Part shown: in pieces, positions 1 to 2,426 of the stretch
How positions within the stretch are numbered: position 1 is the stretch's first letter
Layout of the letters: the number at the start of each line of letters is the position of its first letter
The notes under the pieces: generated by a model
Seen by the model: only the letters and a program-made list of their open reading frames with translations
Databases searched by the model: none
What the model was told of the DNA's origin: nothing
Program-made: the position numbers and the translations under genes
NCBI GenBank assembly: GCA_904063045.1
Contig: CAJFCJ010000019.1
Location: 3,292,684-3,356,683 of the forward strand
Length of the DNA: 64,000 bases
Source of the DNA: Dimorphilus gyrociliatus
Lineage: Eukaryota > Animalia > Annelida
Direction of reading: 5' to 3'

Positions 1-2426
1 AGTATTATGCAGTTCCTTGTCCTGACGAGAATGAAGAAAGTGAACAAGAAATGGAAAAGATTAAGGTATTGTTAAATATTTAAAGATAAATTTATTCGCA
101 ATCTAAACCGTTGTGCGTGGTATAGAAAATGAAGTCAATTCAAGATAAAACACCTGCACCTAATTCAATCAAAGACGTTCAAACGCGACAAGACGTTATT
201 CGAGCCACCGACTTTAGTTTTCTTATGGTTCTCGGGAAGGGAAGCTTCGGTAAAGTGATGCTAGCCGAAAGGAAAGGGACAGACGAATTGTACGCTATAA
301 AAATTCTCAAAAAAGATGTAATTATTCAAGATGATGATGTTGAATGTGTAATGATAGAAAAACGAGTATTGGCTATGCAGGGAAAACCACCTTTTTTGGT
401 TCAATTGCATTCCTGTTTTCAAACTATGGTAAAATCAATTGTTAATTTTATAATAGAATTATTAAATTTAATTATTAAATGTTAAAAAATTTAAGGATCG
501 CTTATATTTCGTAATGGAGTACGTAAATGGTGGAGATTTGATGTATAGAATACAGCAGGAGGGAAAATTTAAAGAACCTATTGCTGTATTTTACTCAGCA
601 GAAATTGCAATTGGCTTATTTTATTTACATTCTAAAGGGGTCGTCTATCGGTATTGTCTTTGATTTTAAACCAAAAAAAGCATTTTATTCTTATTTGCTT
701 ATTATATTATTATAGTGATTTAAAGTTAGATAACGTAATGCTGGATGCTGAGGGTCATATTAAAATTGCCGATTTTGGTATGTGCAAAGAAGGTATACAT
801 GGCGACAAGACGACGAGAACGTTTTGTGGAACGCCAGATTATATTGCGCCTGAGGCGAGTGACGTGACCTTTTAGTAATTTCATAATCTACGTTTCTTAT
901 TTTTCCTTACAGATTGTTCTATATCAACCATACGGAAAATCGGTAGATTGGTGGGCCTATGGCGTTCTTTTATATGAAATGCTTGCTGGTCAACCCCCTT
1001 TCGACGGGGAAGACGAAGAAGAGCTATTTACCTCCATAACAGATCATAACGTATCCTATCCAAAGGCCCTTTCTAAGGAAGCTGTCTCTATTTGTAAAGG
1101 GGTATATGATTTCTTTATTTTGTTTGTTTAACAAATATAAACGAGTCTTATTTTCAGCTGCTAACGAAAAATCCTGCAAAGCGATTAGGTTGTTCTACTT
1201 GCGGAGAACGCGACATTAAAGATCACGCTTTCTTTAGACGGATCGATTGGGATAAGATCGAAAACAAAGAAATACAACCTCCCTATAAGCCAAAAATCGT
1301 AAGTTATGAAAAAAATTATTTATATGCTTTCTACTAATGAATAGAGTAGTCTCACTTAGGCGCTCACTCGATCTTTTTTCATTTTTTTATTGTTAATTAT
1401 GTATATTTGGTATTACTTATTCCATTTCATCTGCCGTGTCTTTGCCATAATTTATCAGTTATCGCTTGCGTAATTTTTTTTATCGATGCTTTTTTTATAC
1501 TTTTTTTTGTTTGTATGTTTGTTTTTAACTGGAGATTTTTGTTTTTGTCTTCTAAAATCTCTCTACCGTTTTTTTTATTTTTTTTAACATCATTCCTCTG
1601 CCTCTTCTCTAATTTTGGAAATTTTTAATTGAAGCAAGTAGAAACATTTGCTTTCTAATTTTCGCAAAAAAAATCTCCTTACAACAACTGTATCCTATTC
1701 ATTCTCTTTATTTTTAATTTTGGTATATTTCAGACGGATGGGAGAAAAGCTGAAAATTTCGACCGTTTTTTTACAAAAACCACTTTGAATATGACACCAG
1801 TAGATAGTACATTGCTAATGAATTTTGGCGATGAAATTTTTGAAGGATTCTCTCTCGTTAATCATTCGTTTGTTACGACAACCTAAAAAAGATTTAACAA
1901 TCTTAATAATTGAACTTCGTTTGTGATTACAGTTCTCTCTCTCTCTCTCTCTCTTTCTTTTTTTTTTAAAGAATAGATTTGTTTCTTTATTTATTTGTCT
2001 AATATTTTTTTTACTTGGAAAAAAATTGAGTTAAAAAGTCTTTATTGGCAAACATATATAATTCCATCTAATTTCTAGCGTGTGTTTGCTTCCCTATAGT
2101 AAAAAATTGTTCGGAAATTAAAGCGGTATGCACGTATGATGGGAATACAAATTTAATCTGACCTTTTTTTCTTACACTACCGTTTACCGAACGAATTCTG
2201 TATTTAATCCAACTTAGGGTGGCGAATGTTTTAACGTTTTACCCATTTGATAATTGTTCATTTTTCTTTACAGAAAAGTCGGAAAGATGTGTCGAATTTC
2301 GACCGAGAGTTCACCAGTGAAGCGGCCAAATTAACACCAACCGACAAACTATTCATAATGAATCTTGATCAAACGGAATTCTCCGGATTTTCATACGCTA
2401 ATCCAGAATTCATTGTTCACGTTTAA
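1..2426 (+). CDS. PRKCB: Conventional protein kinase C (alpha/beta type), 3' half; 5' end outside window. Exons <1-65, 126-428, 496-650, 716-854, 913-1101, 1158-1298, then alternative last exon 1734-1886 or 2274-2426
   Basis: Spliced translation gives [48 protein letters not shown] plus turn and hydrophobic motifs; all intron phases join. Symbol marks the closest vertebrate type; it is probably the single invertebrate cPKC. Confidence 0.97.
1734..1886 (+). CDS. PKC alternative last exon A (betaII/alpha-like): [50 protein letters not shown]
   Basis: tttcag acceptor ending 1733, phase 0, 50 codons plus TAA; [11 protein letters not shown] turn motif, FEGFS hydrophobic motif. Confidence 0.85.
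   Translation, partial: TDGRKAENFDRFFTKTTLNMTPVDSTLLMNFGDEIFEGFSLVNHSFVTTT
1935..1967 (+). repeat. (CT)n microsatellite followed by a T-run, between the two PKC last exons
   Basis: Directly visible ctctct...ctttctttttttttt. Confidence 0.9.
2274..2426 (+). CDS. PKC alternative last exon B (betaI-like): [50 protein letters not shown]
   Basis: ttacag acceptor ending 2273, phase 0, 50 codons plus TAA; [14 protein letters not shown] matches the recalled PKC-betaI tail. Confidence 0.92.
   Translation, partial: KSRKDVSNFDREFTSEAAKLTPTDKLFIMNLDQTEFSGFSYANPEFIVHV

Follow-up and report, generated by a model that had tools for sequence, protein, structure and literature searches.

Does the annelid Dimorphilus gyrociliatus hold the same pair of alternative last exons, betaII-type before betaI-type, that vertebrates carry in the protein kinase C (PKC) gene PRKCB, and is such a pair shared by descent? 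The question is raised by a 64,000-nt stretch of contig CAJFCJ010000019.1 (GenBank assembly GCA_904063045.1, positions 3,292,684 to 3,356,683), here called the window and numbered from its first letter. Each exon of the window was used separately as a query, and reading and translation exon by exon place the window start inside a classical PKC (cPKC) gene on the plus strand, with the 5' part of the gene upstream of the window. The gene ends in two homologous exons, A (1734..1886) and B (2274..2426). The last constant exon of this Ca2+/diacylglycerol-type PKC can be spliced to either tail, giving two kinases that differ only in their final 50 residues. These residues form the V5 region (AGC C-tail), which wraps around the lobes of the kinase and in which the NFD, turn and hydrophobic motifs lie. 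Our interpretation, which we regard as very probable, is that A and B are an orthologous betaII/betaI-type tail pair derived from one tandem exon duplication before the protostome-deuterostome ancestor and kept in the worm.

The two exons can be read directly from the DNA. The first-pass annotation had described two phase-0 last exons of 153 nt, each with its own acceptor, turn motif, hydrophobic motif and stop, and direct reading with frame-by-frame translation confirmed this description. Both consist of 50 codons and a TAA stop, both are preceded by a pyrimidine tract and AG, and each is open solely in the reading frame carried over from the constant exon at 1158..1298, which ends in phase 0. 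The gap between them is 387 nt. Assignment of both exons draws on frame, Pfam, RNA and the tree described below. Both pass the gathering score of the Pfam family Pkinase_C (PF00433; 20.9 bits), exon A at 25.2 bits and exon B at 54.6 bits, and BLASTP aligns one with the other at 17 of 44 identical positions (E 7e-11). The NFD motif and the Thr-Pro turn motif occur at their usual spacing (ENFD and MTPVD in A; SNFD and LTPTD in B) and fall in the same columns as those of PKC beta and alpha chains in the PDB. The hydrophobic motif (F-x-x-F-S/T-F/Y) is canonical in exon B (FSGFSY), whereas exon A reads FEGFSL, with Leu for the final aromatic residue. The earlier remark that exon A has FSL in place of FSF or FSY is thus correct for the worm, but the residue is not peculiar to it: the betaII-type exon of the fish Siganus reads FQGFSL, with the same unusual Leu. 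Exon B ends in VHV, which the first-pass annotation had read as a class II PDZ-like motif and which may be a candidate for one; B tails generally keep a terminal V or I and the exact 50-codon length, and those of arthropods end in Q-H-V or E-H-V. A tblastn search of the 64-kb window with 37 tails found no third tail-like exon.

Both tails are used in RNA. We drew on four public runs (X1 to X4) from four studies, all in the form of assembled contigs. The joint 1298->2274 (GT..AG) is present in all four, and one contig of run X3 spans 825 through 1298 into 2274-2474. The joint 1298->1734 (GT..AG), which splices out an intron of 435 nt (1299..1733), is present in two of the four, X1 and X2. Transcripts that use exon A, whose existence the first-pass annotation had set as a test beforehand, therefore occur. 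Run X1 is a marine metatranscriptome on record and is 95-99% alike to the window; run X2 is 90-95% alike at the DNA level and so comes from a relative. The junction contigs splice out every constant intron, including one of GC-AG type, and in run X2 intron depth is 5-7 versus 77 on exons; the material is therefore RNA. Word depths in run X2 (77 on the constant part, 28 on exon A and 28-36 on exon B) are rough, contig depth being a poor measure, and suggest that the two exons are used at a comparable level.

Which vertebrate tail does each exon resemble? Among all PDB chains, exon B scored 71.4 bits against betaI (E 1e-19), compared with 43 bits for alpha, 39.6 for betaII and 28-35 for iota, eta and theta. 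Exon A scored highest against betaII (36.9 bits), followed by alpha (33.9) and betaI (27.6). Profiles built from protostome tails only gave the same first choices: the A profile scored betaII at 65.3 bits, alpha at 65.0, betaI at 61.7, theta at 27 and eta at 22, and the B profile scored betaI at 88.0, alpha at 57, betaII at 49.9, eta at 41.8 and theta at 37. Seen from the target, betaII and alpha score 8-15 bits higher with the A profile, and betaI scores 26 bits higher with the B profile. Pairwise identities agree: worm A matches the fish betaII exon at 25 of 49 positions (51%) and worm B at 17 of 50 (34%), while worm B matches the fish betaI exon at 38 of 50 positions (76%) and other annelid and mollusc B exons at 92%. 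The labels first given to the exons, betaII-like for A and betaI-like for B, are borne out by these scores and identities.

The spread of the B-type tail was seen when exon B was scanned against 1.84 billion representative proteins, which gave 572 matches, 107 of them below 1e-10. The matches are mostly single-exon open reading frames (ORFs), plainly the same exon across many animals. Named B-type tails belong to the arthropod "PKC brain isozyme / Pkc53E", to a hookworm, to flatworms and to tapeworms, and an octocoral tail is B-like. B is thus a slowly evolving tail of ancestral look. A word-index search with an arthropod B tail gave a top 120 that were almost all arthropods, and one with a profile of nine A-type tails gave four short ORFs and was uninformative on the spread of exon A.

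A maximum-likelihood tree of 37 tails over 50 columns, rooted on a coral tail, placed all 16 A tails, both fish betaII exons included, in one group with support 98/93. Within this group, fish are sister to protostomes (96/98), and arthropod, annelid and mollusc subgroups lie inside the protostomes. The B tails make up a comb of short branches in which fish betaI and the arthropods each form a clade; worm exon B stands alongside betaI-type tails from fish, arthropods, molluscs, nematodes and flatworms. Removal of the four longest rows left the A/B split at 97/100. The contrary outcome named in the first-pass annotation, A and B grouping together as a lineage-specific duplication, was not what we found, exon A going with fish betaII. 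Five exon columns (6, 7, 12, 16 and 27) have disjoint residue sets in A and B tails across four phyla and fish; for example, position 7 is E in A versus S, G or C in B, position 12 is hydrophobic versus E, Q or A, and position 27 is I, L or V versus F. At three of the five, the coral (cnidarian) tail shares the state of the B tails. Taken together, these comparisons support exon A as an orthologue of the vertebrate betaII/alpha-type tail, and exon B as an orthologue of betaI and of the tail that is standard in arthropods, nematodes and flatworms.

The arrangement of the exons is also shared. The genomic order constant exon, A, B recurs in three other annelid or annelid-like loci: Paralvinella palmiformis (L003; constant exon at 33371, A at 39271, B at 44480) and two annelid-like contigs (L005, at 7544, 10022 and 14686; L006, at 1822, 4378 and 8644). 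A precedes B in two teleost loci as well, Siganus (L008; constant exon at 7478, A at 8702-8851, B at 12993) and Leuciscus (L009; A at 5713-5868, B at 15187-15342), the constant exon of the latter not being found in the stretch examined. The order noted at the outset, betaII then betaI, is accordingly the same in annelid and fish loci. In every locus where the constant exon was found, Paralvinella and fish included, it ends in phase 0 after KPK(I/A), followed by GT. Vertebrate PRKCB, as seen in the two teleost loci and described for mammals (PMC3537621), is thus like the worm gene in having two homologous exons of about 50 codons with their own stops, the same phase-0 boundary and the betaII-type exon upstream. 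It differs in scale: the fish PRKCB-like loci have kilobase introns, whereas the tail introns of the worm are 435 and 387 nt, so that the pair would have survived squeezed into about 1.1 kb.

The nearest relatives of worm exon A, at 54% identity, are RefSeq isoforms of "calcium-dependent protein kinase C" (the Aplysia PKC Apl I type) from molluscs. At the positions of NFGD and NHSF in worm exon A, the mollusc A tails retain NIDD and NPYF. A-type tails are annotated in Patella, Octopus, the chiton Liolophura, the pulmonate snails Physella and Biomphalaria, and Batillaria. For the last of these, a Batillaria-type snail cDNA (L001, a Logan contig) represents a fully spliced cPKC with a tail 100% identical to the Batillaria protein; it runs from the constant part through an A tail with its stop and 10 nt into a B exon that begins at the same first base as worm B. 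The arthropod "PKC, brain isozyme" or Pkc53E has a B-type tail that is 74-80% identical to worm exon B. Chelicerates and a crayfish add an A-type isoform of the same gene, and the sampled insects show B only. Both isoforms come from single genes in Nymphon, Ixodes, Tachypleus and Procambarus (members of 90%-identity clusters), and RefSeq already annotates both in several invertebrates. By comparison, all 15 of 15 mayfly isoforms are B-type, and a Drosophila-like ORF continues from the constant exon across a short intron into B. In the mite Dinothrombium, the cPKC gene (L007, 5904-8044) takes 2141 nt for 682 residues, is nearly intronless and has the constant exon and B contiguous, with no A-type exon found within 10 kb at that locus. 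The mayflies, the Drosophila-like insect and the mite are apparent losses of A.

How the choice between the tails is made appears to differ between animals. In mammalian PRKCB the betaII exon, which holds a stop, is included as a cassette, and the last (betaI) exon then becomes untranslated region (UTR; PMC3537621). Exon A of the snail cDNA is likewise an internal cassette, of 157 nt, unlike the apparent terminal exon of the worm. No joint from A to B was seen in the worm contigs of the four runs, although contigs cannot prove its absence, and no good donor was found after the exon A stop; where mammals splice the betaII exon on to betaI, a worm contig runs on past A. One contig of run X1 goes from 1813 past 1925, unspliced, into sequence downstream of exon A, and a poly(A)-signal scan found ATTAAA at 2117. 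Because of these four observations, exon A in the worm appears to be terminal, with a separate 3'UTR, and not a cassette of the mammalian kind. The putative 3'UTR would occupy 1887..2140, its end point being provisional, and includes a (CT)n run. The 3'UTR of exon B (2427..2934) has AATAAA at 2905 and is covered by RNA contigs from 2274 to 2922 (X2) and 2934 (X4). Two acceptors appear to compete for one donor in the worm, exon A having a putative 3'UTR and poly(A) signal of its own; in the snail and in mammals, by contrast, it is included as a cassette with a stop and spliced on to B.

There are two side observations on these RNA data. A (CT)n/T-rich simple repeat at 1926-2002, in the presumed 3'UTR of exon A, was skipped as a repeat, so that the RNA contigs appear cut there. 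In run X4 the constant exons have depth 466 versus 129-161 on exon B, leaving about two thirds of the constant depth unaccounted for; a filtered or divergent exon A, another 3' end and a depth artefact are possible causes.

That the A/B pair had a single origin is highly probable, and the explanation to be weighed against it is convergence. Under convergence, tail exons would have been duplicated separately in vertebrates and in protostomes, perhaps several times, and the upstream copies would have gained AENFD and the hydrophobic residue before FT independently. An approximately unbiased (AU) test against a separate vertebrate duplication, with fish A and fish B held together, left that topology unrejected (log-likelihood difference 8.75, p 0.072), and the A profile prefers betaII and alpha over betaI by just 3-4 bits. 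Convergent tandem exon duplications are frequent in the same gene families, and the Drosophila Pkc53E event, which lies in a different region, is classed among them (PMC9741552); the exon duplication of ACOX1 has a triple origin (PMC8373072). Our own data add to the case against a single origin in that the alignment has just 50 columns, the A group sits on a long branch, where long-branch attraction is possible, and the tree was built without the vertebrate alpha and gamma tails and invertebrate deuterostomes, alpha and gamma having been compared only through the PDB searches. On the other side, the tree unites all A tails with and without its longest rows, and its inner topology follows the species tree. 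A and B are fixed for different residues at five columns across four phyla and fish; every locus examined agrees in the upstream/downstream order and in the phase-0 boundary; the snail and mammals have the same stop-containing cassette architecture; and the published dating is Bilateria. We consider convergence improbable, and the order A then B would most likely reflect one tandem exon duplication older than the protostome-deuterostome ancestor. The suggestion in the first-pass annotation that the switch predates the protostome/deuterostome split is thus upheld by the A/betaII group across phyla and by the shared order, with the p value of 0.072 for a vertebrate duplication as its reservation.

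Two further explanations concern the worm alone. Exon A might be a decaying relic, spliced at a low level as noise and giving no working kinase, so that B alone matters. It has the longest annelid branch in the tree (1.07), it reads NFGD for NIDD or NLDQ, FSL for FSF or FSY and NHSF for NPYF or NPEF, its Pfam score is only 25.2 bits, and it is missing from the contigs of runs X3 and X4, where a contig gap proves nothing. Our interpretation itself, apart from the points on the tree, is weakened in that the RNA evidence consists of assembled contigs and not raw reads, that two of the four runs show no exon A, and that the exon A junction contigs include just 29 nt of the constant exon, which is the length expected at a true branch of a k=31 de Bruijn graph. 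As to the relic, the frame of exon A is intact and its acceptor is good; it retains every one of the five A-diagnostic residues as well as NFD, FT, TP-x-D and F-x-G-F-S; the fish betaII exon likewise has FSL; and the A junction occurs in two independent studies, including the relative that is 90-95% alike, where its depth is 28.3 versus 28.3-36 for B. A relic is therefore very unlikely. The idea that the duplication is recent and particular to the worm lineage, which would fit two exons of the same length lying 387 nt apart, can be given almost no credence. Exon A is closer to fish betaII than to its neighbor (51% versus 34%), and B is closer to fish betaI (76%) and to annelid and mollusc B (92%); an AU test disfavors a worm-specific A+B clade (log-likelihood difference 14.95, p 0.046); and the idea is effectively refuted by the same pair in other annelids, molluscs, arthropods and fish.

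An origin of the pair before the vertebrates has already been published. Martinez-Gomez et al. (2021) reported counterparts of the PRKCB exons "in multiple species," with the crown-of-thorns starfish as the named example, included the event in a set of 21 human events that predate the split of vertebrates from invertebrates, and showed exon-specific conserved residues on the structure (PMC8373072). Martinez-Gomez et al. (2022) assigned the event to "Bilateria" and described it as nervous-tissue specific (PMC9741552). The worm gene is thus a compact, well-preserved case of a known ancient alternative-last-exon system. The example named in the published catalogue of exon duplications is a deuterostome, and we did not find annelids, exon order, a mollusc cassette cDNA or exon loss by phylum there. 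Our literature search likewise found nothing on an annelid case, protostome exon order, the snail cassette cDNA or a reciprocal pattern of loss, and no paper on tail isoforms of mollusc or Aplysia PKC Apl I. What is added here is explicit evidence from protostomes and the apparent use of A as a terminal exon in the worm.

Because annelids, molluscs, chelicerates and crustaceans share exon order and diagnostic residues, the switch must be of great age. It would rank among the oldest regulated splice choices in a signaling kinase, regulation in protostomes being presumed. The V5 tail decides the location and partners of PKC, and betaI and betaII count as separate targets for drugs and in disease. 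By analogy with mammalian betaI and betaII, the worm tails would probably guide one and the same catalytic core to different partners or locations. Small, tractable invertebrates could be used to ask what each tail does, and the worm version is attractive in that about 1.7 kb hold the shared donor, the two acceptors with their UTRs and any control elements. A caution follows for comparisons between models: the single cPKC tail of insects and nematodes is B-type and should not be equated with the A-type tail of mammalian PKC alpha.

Going beyond the single origin, a fuller history can be sketched, which we offer tentatively and with slightly more doubt than belief. The bilaterian ancestor may have had a single classical PKC with a regulated, stop-containing betaII-type cassette before the betaI-type exon, and the tails may then have been sorted reciprocally. 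To our knowledge, vertebrate alpha and gamma genes carry the A-type tail only, and under this history they would have kept A alone; the sampled insects, the mite, the nematode and the flatworms would have kept B alone; and annelids, molluscs, chelicerates, decapods and vertebrate PRKCB would have kept both. In the worm, the cassette may have become a self-terminating last exon as introns shrank. If this history is true, the "PKC alpha-like" and "Pkc53E-like" tails would be paralogous exons and not orthologous sequence, and the transfer of V5-dependent functions between model organisms would change.

Upstream of the two tails, the constant part of the worm gene begins in the window with the end of the hinge exon (1..65; open frame, GT donor at 66), joined to the next exon at 65/126 in four RNA runs. 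The kinase domain then occupies exons at 126..428 (ATP-binding lobe; Pfam Pkinase, 32.3 bits; joints in RNA contigs), 496..650 (open frame; RNA joints 428/496 and 650/716), 716..854 (DLKLDN to APE; open frame) and 913..1101 (Pkinase, 43.5 bits; RNA joints), all on the plus strand, as are the tail exons and their flanking sequences. The last constant exon (1158..1298) ends in QPPYKPKI in phase 0, with a gtaagt donor common to both alternative acceptors. The upstream exons of the first-pass annotation stood with minor corrections, to 126-428 and 913-1101. The introns of the constant part are 55-67 nt. One of them (855-912), within the kinase domain between APE and IVLYQPYG, is a GC-AG intron with donor GCGAGT, and it is spliced in the RNA contigs of all four runs.

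Several sequences met in the comparison deserve a brief remark. The betaI-type tail of Leuciscus is extended (ending in IPTQG) and belongs to a distinct fish group with about a dozen ORFs among the exon B scan matches; a fish betaI ORF (P0017) lies on a 1.7-kb contig without an upstream exon. Some short ORFs with a mammalian betaI tail (P0042, P0045 and P0048) may derive from human or other mammalian contigs. The Paralvinella gene model P0178 (L003, 39271-39435) runs in frame from the A tail straight into the B tail (GSVN to KSRRD) through a GT within exon A just ahead of its stop, and is either an annotation artefact or a third, double-tailed isoform. In P0160, a protein from a plant assembly named "Protein kinase C, brain isozyme [Castilleja foliolosa]," the cPKC tail is of arthropod type and occurs as a tandem repeat, most likely insect contamination combined with an assembly or model artefact; P0001 and P0095 have duplicated tail segments like it. 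Finally, the Ixodes protein P0227, annotated as "ribosomal protein S6 kinase-like 1 isoform X4," ends in a cPKC B-type tail and is probably a read-through or merged gene model.

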